IMG/VR virus record: IMGVR_UViG_3300005573_000154
Span: 1-41,236 of that record
Length of the DNA: 41,236 nt
Reading direction: 5' to 3' (one strand)
The notes beneath the pieces are model-generated. The model searched no databases. It had not been told where the DNA came from and was given only the letters and a program-made list of their open reading frames with translations. Shown here one piece after another: positions 6,390-33,178 of the stretch; position 1 is the first letter of the stretch; every line of letters begins with the position of its first letter. Both the position numbers and the translations under genes were made by a program.

Positions 6390-6968
6390 ATGGTGGAGGA
6401 GTGGGATGAAAAAGTTAGGGAGGCGGCTAAGGCAATATTGGCGCATAGAAACGAGATTGAGGAGCTGATACGGATTTACAGGGATTTGCCTATTGTGTAT
6501 GTGTGTCCGTTTTGCGGCTATATCAGTAGGGAGCCGATGAATAGGGAGATAAAGGCGGAAGTGTATTATCGTGGTTGGCCATATGAAGATGAGTGGATTA
6601 CGGAGGTTATTGGTTTCTGTTTTTGTTCTAGGTGTGGAGCGACTCCGGAGAATTGCAAATATTTCTTTGGGTATGTTAAGGATGGTGAGAAGGTGTTGCA
6701 GATAAATAGCGATGACTTGGATAAGGTGAGGGCTAGGAGCCTTAAGGTTATGACGAGGGAGTATAAGGCGGCTGTCGAGAGGATAAAAGCGATACTAGCC
6801 GATGAATTGAATCGCATACGGGAGAGTGCTGACGAGATAGTTTATTGTGCATCTTCCGGAGAATGTTATTGTGTTGAGGAGATGCCTGAGGATGTAGGGA
6901 GGCTGGTGATGACACTTTACTGCCTAATCAAAGATCCGCCTGAAATGGTTGATGAGGAGGTGATTTGA
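6390..6968 (+). CDS. Zn-finger protein
   Basis: CPFC and CSRC pairs; GAGGTGA RBS. Confidence 0.8.
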   Translation: MVEEWDEKVREAAKAILAHRNEIEELIRIYRDLPIVYVCPFCGYISREPMNREIKAEVYYRGWPYEDEWITEVIGFCFCSRCGATPENCKYFFGYVKDGEKVLQINSDDLDKVRARSLKVMTREYKAAVERIKAILADELNRIRESADEIVYCASSGECYCVEEMPEDVGRLVMTLYCLIKDPPEMVDEEVI

Positions 6969-6969
6969 T

Positions 6970-7323
6970 ATGGCCGGGTTCATTAATTTAACACCACATA
7001 AGGTAACCATTTATTCTAGGGATGGCAAAAAGATAATAGCAGAGATTCCTCCAAGCGGGCTAGTCGCAAGGGTTACGGTAACCTCTAGGATTGTAGGCGA
7101 GATAGCAGGGATTCCGGTCAGGAAAACGGAATATGGGGAGATAGAGAATTTGCCTGATCCGATGCCTGACACGTATTACATCGTCAGCACGGTGGTGTTG
7201 ATTGCGTTGAAGGAAAAAGGAATCAATAGGCCTGACGTTATTTCGCCGGACACCAACCCGGATTCCGTTATAAGGGATTCAGAAGGAAGGGTTATAGGGG
7301 TCAGGTTCTTCCAGACCCTATAA
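6970..7323 (+). CDS. Small NLTPH-motif protein; candidate Crn4-like ring nuclease / anti-CRISPR
   Basis: NLTPH...IPPSG.VARV...LP.P....YIVS...R.D...P....RD.EGR.IG pattern. The CDS is secure; the Crn4 assignment is from memory of the family motif and is unverified. Confidence 0.55.
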   Translation: MAGFINLTPHKVTIYSRDGKKIIAEIPPSGLVARVTVTSRIVGEIAGIPVRKTEYGEIENLPDPMPDTYYIVSTVVLIALKEKGINRPDVISPDTNPDSVIRDSEGRVIGVRFFQTL

Positions 7324-7495
7324 AACCCCCCACTTTTTTCCTGTTTTTGGTTCTGTTTTTTATCTCTTGAAGTAGTGGTTAGGCCATTTATCTCTGTAAC
7401 TACACGTGTAATTCCATCTTTAGGGTATGAGCCCATAGACGAGCCGACATAGACGAGCTATTTCCGGTATTACTCTCGAGGTTTGTGGTGCATAT

Positions 7496-14049: not shown

Positions 14050-14796
14050 TCACGGGTTCCACCTAACTTTTAAGAGGTCTTCCAGATGCTTGTATTTGCA
14101 GACTATGAAGTATTCATCGCTCCCGGCAAATAGTAGCCCAACCAGTTGATCGTTCTCGCTTGGCTGGTCTCCCTGCATCAGGAAGACCGGGCTTCCGCTG
14201 TCGCCTCCCTGTGATTGGCCTTTTACCACTATTTGATCCGTGAATACCACGTATTCGTCGTTATACCAGACTTTTACGGTTGCATTGTCATTTACTATTA
14301 CGCCTTCGGTGTATCCCGTAGTTCTCCCGCATTTCCATACCTTGCGGCCAACCACGCCATCCCCGGGGTGGGTTCCCTTTGGAAGTATGATTGATCCATC
14401 CTCCATGTAAACCCCTTTCGCTATGCTCCTATCATTGGATGATGGCTGGAATGTGGCCACAGCCGCATCTATGAGCCTGTATTCCTCTGAGCACCATTTT
14501 CTCAGTAGTTGGCCGAATATCATGCATATGTATGCCTTGAGTGTTGATGGCATTACTGGAACGTATCTCTTTAGTATTCCAACCCTATCATGCGGGTCTT
14601 TGCCCCCGTCATATGGGCCAGGCTGGACTATTGCCGTTTTTCCAGGGTCTCCTCGGAAGACGTGCCAGTTGCTTACCAGCACCTCCGTGTTGTCGGTTAT
14701 GTCTTGGAAGACGCCGGATAAAGTCCCGGCGGTAGTTTTTGTTGAGCCAATGCTGACTCCCCCCGCCAACACGCTTACCCGGCCCTTCCTGTCCAT
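14050..14796 (-). CDS. Chymotrypsin-like serine protease, catalytic domain
   Basis: GTL, SNWHV (His), IDAAVA (Asp), GRTTG and GGDSGSPV (Ser) motifs. Confidence 0.9.
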   Translation of the reverse strand: MDRKGRVSVLAGGVSIGSTKTTAGTLSGVFQDITDNTEVLVSNWHVFRGDPGKTAIVQPGPYDGGKDPHDRVGILKRYVPVMPSTLKAYICMIFGQLLRKWCSEEYRLIDAAVATFQPSSNDRSIAKGVYMEDGSIILPKGTHPGDGVVGRKVWKCGRTTGYTEGVIVNDNATVKVWYNDEYVVFTDQIVVKGQSQGGDSGSPVFLMQGDQPSENDQLVGLLFAGSDEYFIVCKYKHLEDLLKVRWNP

Positions 14797-15096: not shown

Positions 15097-15456
15097 CTAT
15101 TCTTCCTTCATGCCGTCCATGATGAAGTTCGTTATCGCCAGCCTGATGTATTCGGATCTGTTCCTGATTCCTTTCTTTTGCATGTCCATCTTCATTAGCG
15201 CTAGCAATCCTTTTGGGATCTTTAGGCTGACGAATACCATGTTCGTGTCATCGTCATCGAATGCGAACTTTTTGACCGGGTTGTTGTCATTGGATTTTCC
15301 GCCATCCAAGATTGATAGCAACTTCATGTGTTCTTTCAAGCCTCTCTGGATTATGAATCGCAGGGCGGTATTGCGGTATCGGTAGAGCTTCATCCGCACC
15401 ATTTTATCAACTATTTGGACTATCGGCTCTGGGAGGTGTAGTGTTACTATTTGCAT
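15097..15456 (-). CDS. Tandem ribbon-helix-helix (CopG/MetJ-like) regulator
   Basis: Two RHH units (IVTLHLPEPIVQIVDKMV...YRNTALR; VSLKIPKGLLALM...NRSEYIRLAI). TAATG overlap with the upstream gene. Confidence 0.85.
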   Translation of the reverse strand: MQIVTLHLPEPIVQIVDKMVRMKLYRYRNTALRFIIQRGLKEHMKLLSILDGGKSNDNNPVKKFAFDDDDTNMVFVSLKIPKGLLALMKMDMQKKGIRNRSEYIRLAITNFIMDGMKEE

Positions 15457-15656
15457 TACTCCTTCACCTCCTCGACGCTCACACGTATAGTCCATCCTAT
15501 GACTTGGTCGCCGTAGCAGTCATTGCTCCAGAATGTCTCGTGCATTCCCTTGATCATGTCTAATGCTTCTTGAATTGTGTCACATTTCTTTATCCTGACG
15601 CTTCCATCCTCGCCGTCCAAGAATACGTCAAACTTCAATACCTTGATCTCGCCCAT
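15456..15656 (-). CDS. Small hypothetical protein
   Basis: Start at MGEIKV; stop overlaps the RHH start codon. Confidence 0.6.
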   Translation of the reverse strand: MGEIKVLKFDVFLDGEDGSVRIKKCDTIQEALDMIKGMHETFWSNDCYGDQVIGWTIRVSVEEVKE

Positions 15657-15801: not shown

Positions 15802-15987
15802 ATGGCTCGGGTTAAGCTGGTGCATGTAAGGATTGAGGAGGATGTGTATCGCAAGATATGGGCTATTGTGGCGGATAGGTATCTGACGCATAGCCGCAAC
15901 TTGTCAGCTATTGTGAATGAGGCTTTGAAGGAGTATATTCGAAAATATGAGAGTAAAGGCGAGAAGAGGCGAAAGAGGAGGACATAA
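15802..15987 (+). CDS. RHH DNA-binding protein
   Basis: VHVRIEEDVYRKI...LSAIVNEALKEYI. Confidence 0.85.
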   Translation: MARVKLVHVRIEEDVYRKIWAIVADRYLTHSRNLSAIVNEALKEYIRKYESKGEKRRKRRT

Positions 15988-16044: not shown

Positions 16045-16452
16045 ATGGAAAACGAGTTCCTGAAACTATGGTCTGAGCTGGAGGAAATCGCCGACAGGGC
16101 TAGGCGTGAGGCTAGGGGCGTCGCCATCAAGGTATGCAACGTGATCAAGGAGAGGTATTGGGATCGCATCAAGGCTGTGGCCGAGAAGTATGGCCTTGAG
16201 CCGAAGCTTGGCATAGAGATCAATGGTAGTGATCCAATTAGCTATGTGCCGGTGCTGTATTTGATTTCCGAGGAGGTGCTGGCGCCGGAGCTGGTCGAGA
16301 ACCTTAAGGAGAATATCCATAGGGAGCTAGGGGCGTGGATCAGCGATGCAAGGCTACATGTGGTGTTGCTGACAAGGGATGCCAAGCGTTTCCTGAACCT
16401 GGAGCTGATCAAGAATAATGAAAAGAAGGGGGGTGAGGGTGATGGAAGCTGA
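16045..16452 (+). CDS. Hypothetical protein overlapping the tas-like gene start
   Basis: GAGGTGA RBS; promoter-like TTTTTAAGGTGCTTATG upstream; 3' end overlaps the ATG at 16442. Confidence 0.75.
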   Translation: MENEFLKLWSELEEIADRARREARGVAIKVCNVIKERYWDRIKAVAEKYGLEPKLGIEINGSDPISYVPVLYLISEEVLAPELVENLKENIHRELGAWISDARLHVVLLTRDAKRFLNLELIKNNEKKGGEGDGS

Positions 16453-17326
16453 GGCTGGAGGGATCCTAGTCTTCGATGACTGGAATGAACTGTGGAGGTT
16501 CATCGAGTCCCGGAAAGAATATGTTGCCATTGATAGGGCGAAGACTAAAGGGAATAAGACGGCGTATTTGGCTAGGCTGACGAACGACATATGTAGGCTT
16601 CCGGAGATCTTTAAGGGCAGTATGGCGCATCATTATAGCTTGGAAGGGTTTGCGAAGCTTGCCTTGATGCTGAGGAGGCAGAAGCAGAGCTTGGACGCCA
16701 TACGGAAAGAGTATGCTTGGCAGGATTGGGCTGTCGATGCTTTAAACCAGATTATTAAGCAACGTGAAGGGCTGATTGACGAGATATACGAGCATGTCGC
16801 TGTTCACCCGGTAGTCCAATGGGTTAAGCGGGTAAAAGGGCTTGGAAAGCATGATGCAATACTATTCTTGGGCTTTATTGATCCGCATATTGCGACCTCG
16901 GCGGGGAAGGCTTACAAGTATTGGTGCCTCGCAGGCCCCGAATCGAGGCTAAAGTCTGGTAGGAAAGCTGAGGGCAGGCCTATCCTTAGAGGCGAGGGGT
17001 TCTTCATGGCAAGCAGGATCTGGATGCGAGGCGATGAATATTACAAGCCGCTAGCTGAAGCAAAAAAGGCATATTATTTGGACAAGCTACCGCAAGATGA
17101 GAAAGGTAGAAATGCACATGCACATATCAGGGCATTGCTTTGGCTGGCCAGACTACTTGTTGGCCATGCTTGGGAGATGCATCGCAAGTTCGAGCGGTTG
17201 CCGATTAACCCGCATGCCAACCATATTCCGCCAAAGCCCGATGAAGATGCCGTTTTCGATAACGATAAGATCCTAAATGCGATAAGGAATGGCCTAAGGC
17301 TTCCGCCCGAGGCTGTCAAGGTTTAA
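16442..17326 (+). CDS. TIGR-associated (Tas-like) RNA-guided protein: IS110/Nop-like RNA-binding domain, coiled coil and short N-terminal domain
   Basis: HPVVQWVKRVKGLG...LGFIDP...SAGKAYKYWCL...HAHIRALLWLARLLVGHAW...LP resembles the IS110 C-terminal / Nop fold. Directly upstream of a dual-repeat array. ATG 16442 follows a GGTGAGGG RBS. Confidence 0.85.
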   Translation: MEAEAGGILVFDDWNELWRFIESRKEYVAIDRAKTKGNKTAYLARLTNDICRLPEIFKGSMAHHYSLEGFAKLALMLRRQKQSLDAIRKEYAWQDWAVDALNQIIKQREGLIDEIYEHVAVHPVVQWVKRVKGLGKHDAILFLGFIDPHIATSAGKAYKYWCLAGPESRLKSGRKAEGRPILRGEGFFMASRIWMRGDEYYKPLAEAKKAYYLDKLPQDEKGRNAHAHIRALLWLARLLVGHAWEMHRKFERLPINPHANHIPPKPDEDAVFDNDKILNAIRNGLRLPPEAVKV

Positions 17327-17330
17327 ATTT
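17321..17330 (+). promoter_or_regulatory. Putative TATA box for the guide array
   Basis: AAGGTTTAAATT overlaps the tas stop codon, centred about 26 nt upstream of G17352 in the first repeat. It resembles the other viral AAGGTTTATA promoters. Confidence 0.55.
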
Positions 17331-17350: not shown

Positions 17351-18310
17351 TGCGAGCTGGAAAACTTAGTGAGCTGTATGATGTAGCGAGCTACTCTTAA
17401 CAGTGAGCTAGATAGATGAGCGAGCTTAGGAAGAGAGTGAGCTGGATTAGGAAGCGAGCTTGAGAATTAAGGGAGCTTAATGCCAGAGCGAGCTTCTTCT
17501 AAAAGTGAGCTGGAACACATAGCGAGCTGGAAAGAAAAGTGAGCTACGCACGAAAGCGAGCTGGACTGTGAAGTGAGCTAAGTCTTTGGGCGAGCTTAAA
17601 ATCGGAGTGAGCTACGGGTTCCAGCGAGCATACCCCTGAAGTGAGCAACCTATCTGAGCGAGCTGATTTTTTAAGTGAGCTATGAGGCATAGCGAGCTAA
17701 ATTGTCCAGTGAGCTGAAGAGAAGAGCGAGCTGGTGGGTGAAGTGAGCTACAATATTTAGCGAGCTTTTTCTGAAAGTGAGCTGGAACACGGAACGAGCT
17801 ACAAGACGGAGTGAACTGCATTGTGTAGCGAGCTAGGATGATGAGTGAGCTGTTCATTGAAGCGAGCTGAGGAATAAAGTGAGCTATCTACTCAAGCGAG
17901 CCACGATAATGAGTGAGCAACCCTCGGGAGCGAGCTGAATGGCTTAGTGAGCAAATAGGTATAGCGAGCTGAGACGATAAGTGAGCTGGGACATAAAGCG
18001 AGCTGAAATAAAAAGTGAGCTAAATAAAAAAGCGAGCTATGAAATCTAGTGAGCTGTGGATTGAAGCGAGCTGTGAGCTTGAGGGAGCTACCAATACAAG
18101 CGAGCTGGAATCGTGAGGAAGCTAGGGGGAATAGCGAGCTTAAAATCTGAGTGAGCTGGAGTCTATAGCGAGCTTTGAATAAAAGTGAGCTACCTCAAGA
18201 AGCGAGCTATATGAAAGAGTGAGCTGGAGGAATGAGCGAGCTGAAATAGAAAGTGAGCTACGCAATAAAGCGAGCTTGAGAAGAAAGTGAGCTATCCCGT
18301 CAAGCGAGCT
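17351..18310 (+). ncRNA. TIGR-type tandem interspaced guide RNA array: 28 units of 34 nt (AGCGAGCT-N9-AGTGAGCT-N9)
   Basis: 57 8-nt repeats at an exact 17-nt period from 17351 to 18303, alternating AGCGAGCT / AGTGAGCT with a few variants; 56 distinct 9-nt spacers; adjacent to the Nop/IS110-like gene. Confidence 0.92.
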
Positions 18311-18331
18311 GAATGGGAAAAAATATGGGGG

Positions 18332-18637
18332 TTAGATGTCTATGAACTGGTATTTGCCTTTGACCCTCATGAATGCTTTTGGCTTGACCTTGTATTCTCC
18401 TTCAAGGGCTTTGAGGTCTTTGAATCTTTCCGCTAGCCTGCTTTGATCCGCTGGGGCGTCTTCCTGTTTTACCTGTATCAGCCATATCTCCTTGTTTTCG
18501 GGGAATATTGCTATGATGTCTGCTGGGCCTAGGCTTCGGCTACTTCTTATGACAAGTGCCCCCATCTCCCTTAGCTTTTCACGGCAGAAGTGTTCCACCT
18601 GGTAGCCCTTCTTGTATGGCGTGGTTTTCTGGCTCAT
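18332..18637 (-). CDS. hjc: Archaeal Holliday junction resolvase (PD-(D/E)XK)
   Basis: KGYQVE...G..VIRS..S.GPADIIA...LIQVK; a typical rudiviral gene. Confidence 0.88.
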   Translation of the reverse strand: MSQKTTPYKKGYQVEHFCREKLREMGALVIRSSRSLGPADIIAIFPENKEIWLIQVKQEDAPADQSRLAERFKDLKALEGEYKVKPKAFMRVKGKYQFIDI

Positions 18638-19093: not shown

Positions 19094-19282
19094 CTATCTT
19101 ACCTTATGCCTCTCCACGTATTCCTTTAACGCCTCATTTATGACCAGCCAGATAGTCCTTACTGGTGTTCCATACTTGAAGGCGGCGATCAGGGCTAGCT
19201 CCCGGTAAACATCACTGTCTATCATGACGTGTTTCCTGACGTATTTTGCCTTGTCTTTTTGGGCAACTTTCTGAGCCGGCAT
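19094..19282 (-). CDS. RHH DNA-binding protein (similar to 15802-15987)
   Basis: KHVMIDSDVYREL...INEALKEYV. Confidence 0.85.
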   Translation of the reverse strand: MPAQKVAQKDKAKYVRKHVMIDSDVYRELALIAAFKYGTPVRTIWLVINEALKEYVERHKVR

Positions 19283-20652: not shown

Positions 20653-21294
20653 GTGAATATCAAGGAGCTGATAGACAGGTCAATGACAAACAGGGCTAAC
20701 GAGAGGCCCCTTGAATACGCCTTCGCATGGTCTTGCCTAGCGCCGCTCCTACTAGTCCCAGAGAAGCATAGGAGGAGGATCAGGATTCTGGATGTTGGAG
20801 GGGCTGACAGCCTGCTATCTAAAACCCTAGCCAACCTGGGCTTCGACACAACCGTAATAGACATAAACCCCGTAGATCACGGCAAGGCGAAATACATATG
20901 CGCCAACATCCTCACATACGACTTTCCCGAGCAGTCATTCGACATCATAATAGCCATCTCAACGATAGAACACATTGGCCTACAATGCTACGGCCAAGAC
21001 ATACAAGACCCGGACGGAGACATCAAGACGATGGAGAAGATCCACAGGTGGCTGAGAAACGGCGGCCTAGCAATAATAACCCTACCATACGGAAAACCAC
21101 ACCACCCGCCAACCTTCGAACGAACCTATAACAAGGACACCCTCAAAGACAGGATACTCAGACACGGATGGAACATCCTAAGGCTGGAATACACGTGTAA
21201 TAACGGGACATGGAGACAATGCCTAGAACAAGAAGCAAACACACATGATGCCGCAGTCCTAATGCTCCTCCAGAAACACAATGCTTATAAATGA
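20653..21294 (+). CDS. Class I SAM-dependent methyltransferase
   Basis: ILDVGGA, VIDIN, FDIIIAISTIEH and LRNGG motifs. Confidence 0.9.
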   Translation: MNIKELIDRSMTNRANERPLEYAFAWSCLAPLLLVPEKHRRRIRILDVGGADSLLSKTLANLGFDTTVIDINPVDHGKAKYICANILTYDFPEQSFDIIIAISTIEHIGLQCYGQDIQDPDGDIKTMEKIHRWLRNGGLAIITLPYGKPHHPPTFERTYNKDTLKDRILRHGWNILRLEYTCNNGTWRQCLEQEANTHDAAVLMLLQKHNAYK

Positions 21295-26642: not shown

Positions 26643-26918
26643 ATGGAGACCAAATCCATCCTCATCCCCCCAATTTTTATGCAGATAGACGGCGTCACGG
26701 TAGAGCTAGTTGAGGTCAGCAAGCACTTCCTAGCCCCAGACCAGCCATACTACATAGCCTCAGTAAAGATTATATACAAGGGGATACACAGCCGGGTCTT
26801 CCCAATCTTCGCAAAAGATATAACAGACCTGAAGAACAAGCTCAAGGTGGAAATAAACAAGGTGAAATTCATAGAATACTCATGCGGACTTGAGGAGGTG
26901 AAGAAGCTCATATGCTAG
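26643..26918 (+). CDS. Hypothetical protein
   Basis: GGGGTGA RBS; overlaps the start of the large gene. Confidence 0.75.
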   Translation: METKSILIPPIFMQIDGVTVELVEVSKHFLAPDQPYYIASVKIIYKGIHSRVFPIFAKDITDLKNKLKVEINKVKFIEYSCGLEEVKKLIC

Positions 26919-29900
26919 ACGATGAACCATTCCAGCTAACCCCAGAGGAAATAGAGGCCATAAGCAAGGCGGTAGCAGACGCAATAGCCCAAAACATACA
27001 AACCATCCAAAACACGATAACAAACAACCTACACGTGTATGAAATAATACCCGAAGACAAAATAGAAGAACTAATTGACCTAGACCTAATAGCATCATCA
27101 GTTCATGGCGTAACCGACATACTGGGACAGATCTCAGGCTGGTTCCAAAGCGTAATAGACAACGCAAGAAAACTCATAGTAAGCGGAATACAGGGGTTCA
27201 TAAATACATATGTAATGCCAGCGATAAACACCATAAAAGACTGGTTCTCTAAAACAGTTCCAGAAGTTGGAAGGGCCTTCGGCGACCTCGTAGGAATAAT
27301 ATCGGACAAGATCACGGCCCCATTAAGATCTGTAGCAAACTTCTTCACAGTAGATATACCAAACTACTTTAGAAAAGTAACCGACTTCTTTACAAAGGAT
27401 ATACCCAGCTTCTTCTCAAAGGTAGTAGATTTCTTCACGAGAGACCTACCCGGATACTTCAGCAAGGTAGCCGACTTCTTCACCAGAGAACTACCAAGCC
27501 GATTCAGCACAGTAATAGACTTCTTCACAAAGACGCTACCGCAACACTTCGGGTCAGTAATAGACTTCTTCACAAAAACACTCCCACAACACTTCGGCAT
27601 GGTAGCCGACTTCTTCACAAAGACAATGCCCCAATACTTTGGAACAGTAGTTAACTTTTTCACCAAAACCCTGCCAGACAACTTCAACATAGTAATAAAC
27701 TTCTTCACCAAAACAATTCCACAATACTTCGGCCTCGTAGCCGACTTTTTCACAAAGACAGTCCCACAATATTTTGGCATGGTAGCAGACTTCTTTACCA
27801 AGACAATTCCACAATACTTCGGCATGGTAACTGACTTCTTCACCAACACGGTGCCAAAATACTTTGGACTATTAGCTGACTTCTTTACCAAAACAGTCCC
27901 ACAATACTTTGGAATGGTGGATGATTTCTTCACTAAAACGGTTCCACAATACTTTGGGCTAGTCGTTGATTTCTTTACCAAGACAGTGCCACAATTCTTC
28001 AGCATGGTAATGGATTTCTTCACCAAAACAGTTCCACAATATTTTACCCTCGTAGCAGACTTCTTCACTAAGACGGTTCCGCAATATTTTGGAATGGTAG
28101 CCGACTTCTTTACTAAGATGGTTCCACAATATTTTGGCATGGTGGCGGACTTCTTCACTAAGACAATTCCACAATATTTTGGAATGGTAGCCGACTTCTT
28201 CACCAAAGCAGTTCCACAATACTTTGGAATGGTAGGCGCATTCTTCACCGAAACGTTGCCAAAATGGATAGAGGGAATGAGAAAAGGGGTTACAGACTTC
28301 ATAGACCTGTTAATGAAACTGCCATCAAGAGCGGCTGACATACTCATGACAGTTGGAAAATTCCTATTCGACACAATTATAGATCCCATGATAAAGGGAA
28401 TCAACACATACATCATAGCACCACTCGCAGGCGGCGTAGAAAGAATGTCAGGAATACTCAACAGCGTTGGAGCCGCATTCCAAGGATTCATGAACGCAAT
28501 CCTAAAATTCCCAGAATGGTTCCAGAGAAACCTAGTCGAACCATTCCTATCAGGACTAGGAAAAATAGGTGAATGGATCTGGAATGCACTGCCAGGATGG
28601 GTGAAAGATGCATTAAACGCAATCACGAACTTCTTCACCAAAGACTTGGTAAACTTCTTCACCAAAACCCTGCCAAGCTTCTTCGACACATTATCCAAAG
28701 GGTTCCAAGACTTCATAAAAGACCCACTTGGATGGTTCCAGAGAAACCTAGTTGAACCGCTAGTTGAAGGCCTAAACGCCATCGGGCAATGGATATGGAA
28801 CGCCCTCCCAGACTGGATGAAGAACGCAATAACAGCAATACAAGACTTCTTCACCAAGACAGTTCCAGAATTCTTCAGCTCAATTGCAAAAGGAATACAG
28901 GAATTCTTCAAAGACCCATTAGGATGGCTCAAAACACACCTAGTCGAACCAATAATCCAAGGATTCAATGCCCTGGGACAATGGATTTGGAACGCATTAC
29001 CGGATTGGCTCAAAGAAGGGCTAGAGGCAATAGGAAACGTATTCAAGGCAATAGCAGAAGGTGTAGTAAACTTCTTCAAAGACCCACTGAGAACAATCAT
29101 GAAAGGATTCGAAGCATTATGGAGCGGAATACAATGGCTGGGACAGAAAATCTGGGAAGGCCTACAATGGCTAGGCGGAATAATATTCAAGGGGCTGGTA
29201 ACCGCAGGAGAATGGCTATGGAACGCAATTAAGGGAGGGGTAGAATGGTTCATAAAGGCGCTAACAGACTTCGGGACAACAATCGTCAACACGATAACAG
29301 GCGCAGTAGTAGGGGGGCTAAAGGCAATAGGGGAATCGCTCATAAAAATGACCGTTGACTTCGTGGAATGGCTACTCGGAGCATCACAGAAATGCGCAAC
29401 ACATGTGGGCCCAGCAATAACCGACCTAGCCGTCGCATTAGTTAAGCCATTCGGAGTTATAGTTCCAACACAATTAGGTGCACCACTAGTAGCACTAGTT
29501 GACGAAGTCAAGCTCGCCAAGAACATCTCACAGTCCATAACATCCCTTGGCAAACTAATCGTGCTATGGGGTGGAACCATCGCAACCAGCCAAGCCCTCG
29601 CAACAGGAGCATGGGCGATACTGCACGGCATCGCAACGCCGCTGGACAAGGTGAGGATAGTAACACCATTCAAGATAAAGGCTAAGGCAAAAGGCAAGGG
29701 CAAGTTTCATCCGGCTGGAGTTGGCGCTGAGGGAGGAGCAGAGGGAGGCGCTGAGGCAGGAATATCTGTCCCACTAACGATAAACCTAGGACTATTCATA
29801 AGGCATATTGCCAGCGAGATAAGGAAACACGCCGACACAATAGGAAGATCACTTGCATATGGATTCGGCATATGGATAACCCAGCCGATGGTCAGGCTCG

Positions 29901-32900
29901 CAAGTAGCATATTCAGAAACATGCTAGTCGTTGAGCTACCAACACTAGAAATGATTACCGAATCCATGAGGAGACACATGCCACACGAAAAATTCAAGGA
30001 CATATTGAACAAGTCAAGAGAATACCTAGCCCTCTACGGATACAGCGACACCGTGATACAATGGCTCACCTCAACAGTAGATGAAGAGGGAATGGCAATA
30101 ACCATAACTGACAGATTTGGCAGACCAAGGAAGATCCCAGTATCATTAATGTATAACCTGCCGTCACCATCCGACGTTGCCAGAATGGTTATCAGAGATG
30201 TAATCATAAACATTGACGACCTGAAAAAGATGTTCATGATGAGAGGCATGAGCGAGGACATAGGCATCCTATACTACCTGCTACACTTCAGATACCCGCC
30301 ACCCGAAAGGCTATGGATATTCTACACCAGGGGAATAAGCGGGCTACTATGGGCTAGAATATCAGGAACAGAAGCTAGAGACGTTGAAAGGGATGTTAAG
30401 GCATCTGGAGGATTCCTGCCAAGATCACCAGAAGAACTCAACTTTGAAGCATCAACGTTAGAGAACCTACTAAAGACATACCTAAAGTGGCATGATTTTG
30501 CGAGGTTTGCATATGCAGAAGGATGGCCATCAGACAACCTCATAGTAATGGATACACTTGCAGACATACCGACGAAGATTGATCAGAGATGGCTCGTTAG
30601 GTTTGGGCTATACCAGCTACTGAGCGAGAGGGGAGTCGGATATAAATCAGCCGTAAGCGAATTCTGTGAAAAGGTTGTAGAAAGCGCATCAAAAGGAAAG
30701 GTAATATTAGACCTAACCAACTTCTGCCGGACGCTACAAGCGACAGGCCTGCACCCATACTGGGTTCCAATAACTGCGGTAGCTGAGACGATAAACGCCA
30801 TAACGGATGAGAGAACGCTCCTGAGAACCGGCGTAATGAGCCTATATAAGGAGGGATTCCTCGACAGCTCCGCTGTATCAAGGCTTGGCCAGGGGATAGT
30901 GATGACATCATTCAACGTGGCATACTTTGACCCAGTATCAAACACGTGGAAGACCGGATACATAAACGTCCCGCTAAGATACCTTGGAATGGAGGCCCAG
31001 CTAATAGGCCTAAGGGCCATAATGGACAGGGCCCTAGACATCCTAAGAGACATACAGAGAGATGCACTAACAGCATACCAGGAATTCATAATAACGGATG
31101 AAAGCGAATTCAAGTCAAAGCTATCAAACATAATAAACAGCATAAACTCAATCTACGAACAGGAATACACCAAGATAATCGGAGAATCGCCGCCAGAGGA
31201 TCTAAAGCTCAAATACGTTGAAAGCTACTACTCAGCATACCTCAAATCCCTAGAGATTTGGAGAGAGGTATTCACCACAAGAAGGATCAGGATGTGGACT
31301 CAGAGATGGCTAGGATGGGTCATGTATAGGGCCGCATACGGAACAGTAACAAAGGAAGACATACAGAAACTCGTATCACTAATGGGAGACTACGCAAAGC
31401 TAACCGAAAAAGAAGTCCAATTCATACAAGAAGTCCTAAACATAATGTATGGCATGGCAAGGAGGGAGGTGGCGGCTGAATACCTGCCAACGCCATCAAC
31501 AATGGCCACGCTAAGCGAATACCTGACACTAGACACAGGCCTAGTCAAGAAAATACTAACGGAGAGGGGAATACCAGAAGAATGGCAGAACATATGGCTG
31601 AGATACATATCGGTAAAGCCGATCAAATCAGATGCAAAATCACTGCTATCAGCACATGTAAGAGCATTCAGATACGGGGCAATAACAAGGGAAGCCCTAG
31701 ACGCATTCATATCAACCCTGCCACAATACGGCTTCACGGATAAGGAGATAGACATCGTAAGGAGAATCGCAGAACTGGAGGAGATGATACTTGAAGCCCG
31801 TGAAAACAGGCGTGAATACATACCAACACCATCAATGCTGGCAACACTATCAGAGTATGTAGCCCTAGACCCAAGCATGATTCAAAAGGTATTTGATGCC
31901 AGAAATGTTCCACCAGAATGGAGGGCAATATGGTCTCAATACATATCAGTCAGGCCGATAGCGGATGATGTTAAGGCATTGCTATCAACATACAGGCGTG
32001 TATTACTATACGTCAAGATACCCGACGAAATAGCCAAACAGGTGCTAGAATACGCCAAGCTGATAGGGTTTACTGACAGAGAGCTAGCAATACTAGACCT
32101 GAGAAACAGGCTAGAGGAAATGCTCATAGAATACAGGGAGAACAGGAGAGAATACATACCAACACCATCAATGCTTGCAACAATGTCAGAATACATGACA
32201 ATACCAGCAGATCTAATACAAAAGGTGTTCGAAGCAAGGCATGTTCCACCTGAATGGCAGACAATATGGATGCAGTATATCAACATCAGGCCGATAGTTG
32301 ATGATGTAAGAGGCTTATTATCCTCATACCGGAGAGCCCTGATATACGTCACGCTACCGGATGACATAAAGAAGAAGGTGGAATCCTACGCCAACACAAT
32401 AGGCTTCACCCAGACGGAATGGGACATACTGACACTAAGAGTAACCCTTGAGGAACTGATACTAGAGGCCAGGGAGAATAGGCGTGAATACATACCAACA
32501 CCAATGACATTGGCAACACTATGCGAATACCTCCCAGAGGCCAGAGAGTTCTTTGACGACGTCGTAAAGGCTAGGAGGATACCAACTGAATGGCAGAAGC
32601 TATGGGCCAAATACATAGACCTCAGGCCGCTTATTGACGACATAAAGAGATACCTGTCAAGGGCAGAACAACTATACGTCAGATTCATGATAAAGAAGGA
32701 CGACTTCATGAAGGTTCTAAACGAGGTTGCCAAGAACCTAGGATACACGACAACCGAGGTTGACTTCCTGCTAAAGGTAACAGAATTCGAGAGATACGCC
32801 AACGCATGGAGAGAGCTAATAGGAACCGTTGACAGGCTAGTAGAGCTCAGCGAATATAGCCCAAGAGCATCAAAATACGCCCTAGGAAAGGTCTATGAGA

Positions 32901-33178
32901 TGATAGACGCCCTCCCACTCCCACAGGCAGACAAACAGGAGCTAAAGGCCATGTGGGAGGAATACATCAAGAATAGGCCGGTCAAATCAGAGGCAAGGCT
33001 ATACATCACACAGCTATCAAACGCCTATGCAGAAGGCCTGATAAGCGATGCGGACTTCTCCAGAGAACTAGAATCAATGAAGCAATGGGGATTCTCCGAC
33101 AACGAGATAATGTTCTATAAAGCAAGGGCCGCACTCATGAAGGCAAGAAAGCTCAAGCTACCGCTAATGTGGGAGTAG
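26912..33178 (+). CDS. Large (2088 aa) repeat-rich structural protein, probably terminal structure/fibre
   Basis: 21 x 15-aa repeats (VADFFTKTVPQYFGM), Trp-rich amphipathic repeats, and four 112-aa C-terminal repeats (EYIPTPSMLATLSEY). Confidence 0.8.
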   Translation: MLDDEPFQLTPEEIEAISKAVADAIAQNIQTIQNTITNNLHVYEIIPEDKIEELIDLDLIASSVHGVTDILGQISGWFQSVIDNARKLIVSGIQGFINTYVMPAINTIKDWFSKTVPEVGRAFGDLVGIISDKITAPLRSVANFFTVDIPNYFRKVTDFFTKDIPSFFSKVVDFFTRDLPGYFSKVADFFTRELPSRFSTVIDFFTKTLPQHFGSVIDFFTKTLPQHFGMVADFFTKTMPQYFGTVVNFFTKTLPDNFNIVINFFTKTIPQYFGLVADFFTKTVPQYFGMVADFFTKTIPQYFGMVTDFFTNTVPKYFGLLADFFTKTVPQYFGMVDDFFTKTVPQYFGLVVDFFTKTVPQFFSMVMDFFTKTVPQYFTLVADFFTKTVPQYFGMVADFFTKMVPQYFGMVADFFTKTIPQYFGMVADFFTKAVPQYFGMVGAFFTETLPKWIEGMRKGVTDFIDLLMKLPSRAADILMTVGKFLFDTIIDPMIKGINTYIIAPLAGGVERMSGILNSVGAAFQGFMNAILKFPEWFQRNLVEPFLSGLGKIGEWIWNALPGWVKDALNAITNFFTKDLVNFFTKTLPSFFDTLSKGFQDFIKDPLGWFQRNLVEPLVEGLNAIGQWIWNALPDWMKNAITAIQDFFTKTVPEFFSSIAKGIQEFFKDPLGWLKTHLVEPIIQGFNALGQWIWNALPDWLKEGLEAIGNVFKAIAEGVVNFFKDPLRTIMKGFEALWSGIQWLGQKIWEGLQWLGGIIFKGLVTAGEWLWNAIKGGVEWFIKALTDFGTTIVNTITGAVVGGLKAIGESLIKMTVDFVEWLLGASQKCATHVGPAITDLAVALVKPFGVIVPTQLGAPLVALVDEVKLAKNISQSITSLGKLIVLWGGTIATSQALATGAWAILHGIATPLDKVRIVTPFKIKAKAKGKGKFHPAGVGAEGGAEGGAEAGISVPLTINLGLFIRHIASEIRKHADTIGRSLAYGFGIWITQPMVRLASSIFRNMLVVELPTLEMITESMRRHMPHEKFKDILNKSREYLALYGYSDTVIQWLTSTVDEEGMAITITDRFGRPRKIPVSLMYNLPSPSDVARMVIRDVIINIDDLKKMFMMRGMSEDIGILYYLLHFRYPPPERLWIFYTRGISGLLWARISGTEARDVERDVKASGGFLPRSPEELNFEASTLENLLKTYLKWHDFARFAYAEGWPSDNLIVMDTLADIPTKIDQRWLVRFGLYQLLSERGVGYKSAVSEFCEKVVESASKGKVILDLTNFCRTLQATGLHPYWVPITAVAETINAITDERTLLRTGVMSLYKEGFLDSSAVSRLGQGIVMTSFNVAYFDPVSNTWKTGYINVPLRYLGMEAQLIGLRAIMDRALDILRDIQRDALTAYQEFIITDESEFKSKLSNIINSINSIYEQEYTKIIGESPPEDLKLKYVESYYSAYLKSLEIWREVFTTRRIRMWTQRWLGWVMYRAAYGTVTKEDIQKLVSLMGDYAKLTEKEVQFIQEVLNIMYGMARREVAAEYLPTPSTMATLSEYLTLDTGLVKKILTERGIPEEWQNIWLRYISVKPIKSDAKSLLSAHVRAFRYGAITREALDAFISTLPQYGFTDKEIDIVRRIAELEEMILEARENRREYIPTPSMLATLSEYVALDPSMIQKVFDARNVPPEWRAIWSQYISVRPIADDVKALLSTYRRVLLYVKIPDEIAKQVLEYAKLIGFTDRELAILDLRNRLEEMLIEYRENRREYIPTPSMLATMSEYMTIPADLIQKVFEARHVPPEWQTIWMQYINIRPIVDDVRGLLSSYRRALIYVTLPDDIKKKVESYANTIGFTQTEWDILTLRVTLEELILEARENRREYIPTPMTLATLCEYLPEAREFFDDVVKARRIPTEWQKLWAKYIDLRPLIDDIKRYLSRAEQLYVRFMIKKDDFMKVLNEVAKNLGYTTTEVDFLLKVTEFERYANAWRELIGTVDRLVELSEYSPRASKYALGKVYEMIDALPLPQADKQELKAMWEEYIKNRPVKSEARLYITQLSNAYAEGLISDADFSRELESMKQWGFSDNEIMFYKARAALMKARKLKLPLMWE
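27332..28276 (+). repeat. 45-bp (15-aa) coding tandem repeat, 21 copies
   Basis: GACTTCTTCACCAA-type units every 45 nt. Confidence 0.9.

Follow-up and report, generated by a model that had tools for sequence, protein, structure and literature searches.

A TIGR-Tas locus in a viral contig and its probably nuclease-less, TasA-type effector

The tas gene and its array

The stretch of DNA analyzed here, called the window below, is the entire 41,236-nucleotide (nt) IMG/VR contig IMGVR_UViG_3300005573_000154, a viral contig of 41 kb that looks complete. It carries a tas gene, encoding a TIGR-associated (Tas) protein, and a TIGR array that starts 25 nt past the stop codon of that gene. The first description of TIGR-Tas systems dates from 2025. 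The features that make up the locus are the following.

16442..17326, plus strand, stop codon included: tas gene, encoding a 294-residue TIGR-associated protein, probably of TasA type (Protein Data Bank (PDB) profile search, Foldseek, NCBIfam)
16442..16630, plus strand: N-terminal region, residues 1-63 (full-length and domain-only AlphaFold2 models; conservation over 17 sequences)
16631..16798, plus strand: coiled-coil dimerisation hairpin, residues 64-119 (AlphaFold2 helices at 64-90 and 95-119; aligns with the coiled coil of TasR and TasH)
16799..17323, plus strand: Nop C-terminal RNA-binding domain (phmmer and profile alignments, invariant columns)
17351..18311, plus strand: dual-repeat TIGR array, 57 repeats in 28 units (exact 17-nt register)

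The tas open reading frame (ORF) can be opened at ATG 16418 or at ATG 16442 and runs to the stop codon at 17324-17326. We take ATG 16442 as the likely start and think it probable that the longer frame, opened at ATG 16418, goes unused: most homologues start at or within a few residues of the second ATG, a Shine-Dalgarno-like run (GGTGAGGGTG) directly precedes it, and tas read from there shares 11 nt with the end of the upstream ORF (16045-16452), whose stop it overlaps. Residue numbers throughout count from ATG 16442 (294 residues).

By sequence, structure and array, the window protein is a member of the Tas family. Among PDB sequences, a single-sequence phmmer search matches TaTasR (9mty) at E=3e-5. 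A profile built from 50 homologues reaches TasR 9mty at E=2.3e-19 and TasH 21kl, along with related entries, at E=3.2e-14, and these alignments are confined to the coiled coil and the Nop C-terminal domain. The AlphaFold2 model, built on the same 50-homologue alignment, has a predicted local distance difference test score (pLDDT) of 93.5 and a predicted template modelling score of 0.90. The best Foldseek matches to the full model are TasH 9w04 and TasR 9mty at E of about 1e-6, followed by the IS621 bridge-RNA recombinase; the alignment to 9mty spans 204 columns at a root-mean-square deviation of 2.5, in the Nop part only. The homologue sets behind these and later results are 117 phmmer relatives, 50 homologues in the profile and alignment, 65 relatives in the maximum-likelihood tree and 17 sequences for N-terminal domain conservation. 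In IMG/VR the sole match is the window contig itself, and megablast and tblastn searches of a phage collection gave nothing but one distant Tas-like match in a Microcystis phage.

The Nop domain includes a 24-residue C-terminal loop (residues 251-274) with an invariant His258 in the motif NPH. In the profile alignment, His258 falls opposite the catalytic H296 of SpTasH, whose processing residues are Y289/H296 (PMC13421893). An 8-residue segment of the loop, the one that holds the catalytic Tyr (Y289) in SpTasH, is missing from the window protein. It has instead a Tyr or His three residues past His258, as HANH in the window protein, H..Y in most relatives and HVDY in TaTasR. Self-processing of the guide is plausible from this alignment but not certain, because the Tyr-bearing segment of SpTasH is missing.

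The array alternates between two 8-nt repeats, an edge repeat (AGCGAGCT, 29 copies, including the first and last repeats of the array) and a loop repeat (AGTGAGCT, 28 copies). All spacers are 9 nt, giving a unit of 34 nt. Faure et al. 2025 (PMC12045711) described this dual-repeat type of TIGR array. An array is found in the same position in every related contig with enough downstream sequence. The repeat pairs of the relatives co-vary, as GGCGAGCA/GGTAAACA in contigs L001 and L003 and AGCGAGCA/AGGGAGCA in L006, and have a common frame, xG....Cx.

Some further details of the array can be seen by comparing it to that of L004, the contig with a 92% identical Tas protein. The window array at 17351-17730 and the L004 array at 6934-7426 are collinear over about the first 22 repeat positions. 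Between corresponding spacers there are 0-3 point changes, and in some cases the spacer is a different one; the spacers thus drift in place, with no change in the 8-nt repeats. Units 24-26 of L004 resemble a diverged copy of units 12-14. Near-duplicate spacers occur inside the window array itself (GGAACACAT/GGAACACGG, TAAAATCGG/TAAAATCTG, ACGCACGAA/ACGCAATAA and GAAATAAAA/GAAATAGAA), which suggests that the array grew by duplication of units followed by divergence. The sequence TTTAAA at 17322-17327 overlaps the tas stop codon about 25 nt before the first repeat and is followed by a T-rich run. It is a candidate archaeal TATA box and could provide the array with a promoter of its own.

The N-terminal region

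The first-pass annotation of this DNA had estimated about 60-70 residues ahead of the coiled coil, and the AlphaFold2 model has 63. Residues 8-50 are confidently modelled as an ordered domain, at a pLDDT of about 90, with the topology strand-helix-strand-strand (b1 at 8-11, a1 at 14-22, b2 at 26-34 and b3 at 40-50). A short linker then leads to the coiled coil. A separate model of residues 1-70 has the same topology at a pLDDT of 79.5. The N-terminal region also holds a neck, marked by invariant C51, L53 and H64 together with position 49, which is always acidic.

Conservation was followed over the 17 domain-bearing sequences, which go down to about 20-24% identity with the window protein over the N-terminal region. 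Y27, C51, L53 and H64 are invariant in this set, and Y42 and L67 are nearly so. The only conserved acidic positions in the domain are E16 (94%) and D/E49 (100%). The D12, D13 pair after strand 1 is acidic in 76% and 71% of the sequences, and D31, the Asp of YVAID, in 65%, the remainder having R, K, S or V at this position. The tip of the b2-b3 hairpin is K/R-G-rich in all members of the clade described below, which hints at contact with flanking DNA or with the guide rather than at catalysis.

Judged by its sequence and predicted structure, the window protein has no nuclease, which was one of the two options that the first-pass annotation gave for this Tas-like effector. Neither an HNH nor a RuvC/DEDD domain was detected by Pfam, by the PDB sequence profile or by Foldseek. 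With the N-terminal domain alone, hmmscan against Pfam at E<=10 gave no match to DEDD_Tnp_IS110, RuvC, HNH or NOP5NT (PF08156), and a profile of the domain had zero matches among PDB sequences. The Foldseek search of the domain against the PDB returned nothing significant; the best E was 0.26, to small alpha/beta folds (uL23, dodecin, ACT-like), and no RuvC, RNase H, HNH or Nop5 chain is among the 50 matches listed. Against BFVD the best E was 0.11, again with no RNase H-fold or HNH protein among the matches listed. The search for stand-alone homologues of the domain yielded one 38-residue fragment and nothing else. A DEDD tetrad is absent from the conservation pattern of the 17 sequences, and so is an HNH pattern of Cys and His, there being a single conserved Cys in the N-terminal region.

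Three known N-termini were considered and rejected as models for this domain. The RuvC domain of TasR, active or dead, disagrees in having its strands in another order and more than three of them, no structural or profile match was obtained, and there are only the two conserved acidic positions. The HNH domain at the N-terminus of TasH is of the beta-beta-alpha-metal type, with pairs of Cys and a His/Asn; there is no Pfam HNH match, and the alignment to TasH comprises the Nop part only. A domain like the N-terminal domain of Nop5 has no support from Pfam or Foldseek.

The RuvC comparison deserves a closer look, since the first-pass annotation had proposed that the domain might be a decayed RuvC remnant. 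It had noticed an echo of IS110/RuvC motifs in the peptide YVAIDRAKTKGNKTAYLARL, encoded at 16520-16579 (plus strand) inside the tas ORF. An RNase H/RuvC fold is made up of five strands, the first three of which come one after another ahead of a helix; the KtD..DA..lA motif of IS110 sits in a helix. The two stretches of the window protein in question, YVAIDRAK and TAYLARL, are instead the two strands of the hairpin, at 26-34 and 40-50 in the AlphaFold2 model. The RuvC fold does not fit, because a helix follows the first strand and because b2 and b3 are joined in a tight hairpin. The structural match to 9mty was limited to the Nop part. With no DEDD_Tnp_IS110 match even at E<=10 and both stretches in the hairpin, the motif echo is at chance level; with this fold, D31 variable and no DEDD tetrad, the remnant proposal was not borne out.

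The distribution of the domain among the relatives gives a different account of its origin. The maximum-likelihood tree, built from 65 Tas relatives, groups the proteins with the domain in a single clade with support of 97/82. It has 18 rows, a count that takes in P0028, which has a variant motif outside the regular-expression pattern. The sister rows have other N-termini: a Cys-rich segment in P0018, nothing before the coiled coil in P0033 and only the E-x-C-x-L...H neck in P0020. No RuvC-type opening (GIDxxK) was seen by eye among the 117 phmmer relatives, although one of them, P0107, has an HNH-like pattern of Cys and His. No relative scanned against Pfam matched DEDD_Tnp_IS110. Because the domain is confined to a single clade whose sister lineages have other N-termini or none, we regard it, on the tree and the predicted fold, as an apparent clade-specific addition to a TasA-like scaffold and not the leftover of a TasR RuvC domain.

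Mode of action, possible partners and neighbouring genes

We propose, at a probability of about 0.78, that 16442-17326 encodes a nuclease-less, TasA-type, RNA-guided effector that only binds its target and blocks transcription or replication there. A binding-only, TasA-like roadblock was also the suggestion of the first-pass annotation and is still the best reading of the locus. The published basis is as follows. Tas proteins of each type, TasA, TasR and TasH, bind tigRNAs that have been cut out of the array at unit length, and for TasA it is processed tigRNAs that are bound (PMC12045711). In published Tas work, the two spacers of a tigRNA pair with opposite strands of an 18-bp site, and in the TasR complex the DNA has a bend of about 180 degrees. 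Binding of targets without cutting, and a reversible repression of transcription, have been described for MbTasA and for dead TasRs. A 2026 preprint on other TasA proteins showed TasA to be an RNA-guided transcriptional repressor (bioRxiv 10.64898/2026.09.09.750476).

By analogy, the array would be transcribed, and a Tas dimer, formed through the coiled coil, would bind the array RNA. Cuts in the edge repeats would then release 34-nt tigRNAs (4+9+8+9+4 nt), probably through His258 in the C-terminal loop. On finding matching DNA, the complex would bend and unwind it and, because no nuclease is present, would stay bound as a roadblock. What it would keep from being transcribed or replicated is most likely a host gene or a mobile element in competition with the virus. 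In the chain, the N-terminal domain occupies the position where TasR and TasH have their nucleases, and from there it would contact flanking DNA or the guide.

Several observations weigh against this proposal. The NCBIfam model NF052498 (TIGR_Tas_endo), an equivalog model for endonuclease forms, matches at E=1.8e-10 and 41.1 bits, below its curated cut-off of 100 bits and in the Nop part only. The loop segment with the catalytic Tyr of SpTasH is missing, as described above. The invariant D/E49, C51 and H64 could, from their conservation, be a metal or catalytic site. Finally, the spacers gave no target in the virus's own genome: the 28 spacer pairs, in both A/B registers and both orders, have 0 matches to the contig at <=2 mismatches, and the 8 matches at 3 mismatches are at chance level (shuffled spacers average 3.6 and reach 8 at most).

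The N-terminal domain and the D/E-x-C...H neck might together be an undescribed Tas module, although we find this doubtful. Such a module could either dock an enzyme that acts in trans or be a small center for catalysis or metal binding, and the archaeal-virus clade would then join TasA, TasH and TasR as a fourth type of effector.

As a docking site, the domain would be an adaptor that recruits a nuclease or other enzyme in trans, much as Nop5 brings in fibrillarin through its own N-terminal domain, and cutting or modification of targets would still take place. The domain of the window protein is conserved and predicted to fold, and it is placed like the fibrillarin-binding domain of Nop5 and the nucleases of TasR and TasH. 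Besides host factors, two neighbouring genes are candidates for the recruited enzyme. The first-pass annotation had named both.

16045..16452, plus strand: 135-residue ORF upstream of tas, overlapping its start (lineage-restricted)
18332..18637, minus strand: convergent 101-residue PD-(D/E)xK-like gene (weak Pfam, PDB and PADLOC matches)

We screened 15 related loci for both by tblastn. The overlap of the upstream ORF with tas stands and would couple the two in translation in the window. However, an ORF of this kind is upstream of tas only in the window and in L004 and L005, where Tas is 92% and 79% identical. It is absent from L006-8, L010-11 and L014-15 (Tas 73-76%), from L003 (58%) and from L001-2 and L012-13 (52%). 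It falls into only 4 homologue clusters and has no match in Pfam, PHROG, NCBIfam or PADLOC. The convergent gene, which had been called an Hjc nuclease, is only weakly PD-(D/E)xK-like, with Mrr_cat at E=0.001 (below the cut-off), the PDB entry 4qbn ("Nuclease") at E=0.005, PADLOC HEC-02B at E=1.2e-4, and an E15...D40...Q55-V-K57 motif that can be read off its sequence. The assignment to Hjc is itself weak. The gene is syntenic, just beyond the array, only in the window, L006, L010 and L011, and no counterpart of it follows the arrays in L014, L012 and L001. In L003 a convergent 102-residue gene follows the array, with no detected similarity to the 101-residue gene of the window.

Judged from these distributions, neither gene is credible as an obligate partner or as a conserved part of the system, because neither tracks the Tas clade. 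For TasA, no consistent partner has been reported apart from ParB-like genes (Faure et al. 2025, PMC12045711). Since neither candidate co-occurs with the N-terminal domain clade and even at E<=10 there is no NOP5NT match, we consider the adaptor unlikely.

The second form of an undescribed module would be a new catalytic or metal module built around D/E49-x-C51 and H64, acting for example in guide processing or nicking. It is true that D/E49, C51, L53 and H64 are invariant across 17 sequences at identities as low as 20-24%, that P0020 retains the neck motif without the strand-helix-strand-strand part, and that a protein missing the Tyr segment of SpTasH may need some other processing residue. 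However, the three residues define no known nuclease site, Foldseek found no fold match to any enzyme in the PDB or BFVD, and the motif, placed where the coiled coil joins on, may be no more than a packing interface. We think such a module quite unlikely.

A decayed RuvC domain is highly improbable: TaTasR 9mty is the closest solved relative by profile, and D12 and D13 lie about as many residues into the chain as catalytic D11 does in TaTasR, but the topology, the replacements of D31, the restriction of the 9mty alignment to the Nop part, the lack of a RuvC match by the domain alone in Foldseek or Pfam, and relatives that show no GIDxxK-type opening and have short TasA-like forms as sister lineages all speak against it.

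The remaining genes of the contig give it its setting. The largest ORF encodes 2088 residues (26912-33178, plus strand). It has no Pfam domain and a weak tblastn similarity to tape-measure proteins and to records of Sulfolobus and Acidianus viruses, which points to an archaeal-virus-like contig. Around the tas locus there are three small ribbon-helix-helix-like proteins, at 15097-15495 (minus strand), 15802-15987 (plus strand) and 19094-19282 (minus strand), and those beginning at 15802 and 19094 are paralogues. Further upstream, 14050-14796 (minus strand) encodes a Nal1_C-like serine protease of the trypsin fold (Pfam E=2.3e-8), which is kept in L004, L005 and L006. Downstream, 20653-21294 (plus strand) resembles a class I S-adenosylmethionine-dependent methyltransferase, matching PADLOC mad2 at E=1.7e-11 and UbiG/BioC weakly. 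The segment 3699-6052 (plus strand) encodes a 522-residue protein with a C-terminal GNAT acetyltransferase domain and then a protein similar to class II glutamine amidotransferases.

Comparison with known systems

If we are right in preferring a TasA-type roadblock, the locus is a further member of a known group, and it leaves the picture of how TasA-type proteins work unchanged. The novelty is in the uncharacterised N-terminal add-on and the neck motif, by which a clade-specific ordered domain is added to the known range of Tas N-termini. The locus is also a clean and long example of its kind, with 28 guides in a viral contig and related contigs that show the array evolving in place, and in the comparison with these neither of the two genes beside it proved to be a conserved partner.

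One useful comparison is to archaeal Nop5 of the box C/D small ribonucleoprotein. The parts come in the same order, with a small N-terminal domain, then a coiled coil for dimerisation and last a Nop domain for binding of a bipartite guide RNA. The window protein differs in having no NOP5NT match, a DNA target rather than an RNA target and no evident fibrillarin-like partner.

The best solved relative by sequence is TaTasR, from a Thermoproteota archaeon (9mty). It has the same dual-repeat array architecture and the same His in the C-terminal loop, with Y or H three residues on (HVDY in TasR, HANH in the window protein). However, TasR has a RuvC domain of about 105 residues with four catalytic acidic residues, where the window protein has a 63-residue segment that is not RuvC. 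The dead TasRs, PateTasR and CsTasR (Xu et al. 2026), would probably lead to the same outcome, guided binding and repression without cleavage. They differ in keeping the RuvC fold with substituted catalytic residues and in using stem-loop tigRNAs, whereas the window has no RuvC and a dual-repeat array.

The closest likeness is to TasA, as represented by FpTasA, PlTasA and MbTasA. These have the same coiled coil and Nop domain, lack a nuclease domain as well and lie next to a TIGR array whose split spacers are 9 nt long, and the same RNA-guided binding without cleavage would be expected (PMC12045711; Xu et al. 2026, bioRxiv 10.64898/2026.09.09.750476). The window array differs in its 8-nt repeats, its 34-nt rather than 36-nt unit and its archaeal-virus-like context. 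The window protein itself is neither a solo Nop domain nor one with a disordered N-terminal extension, but adds to the TasA plan an ordered domain of about 50 residues.
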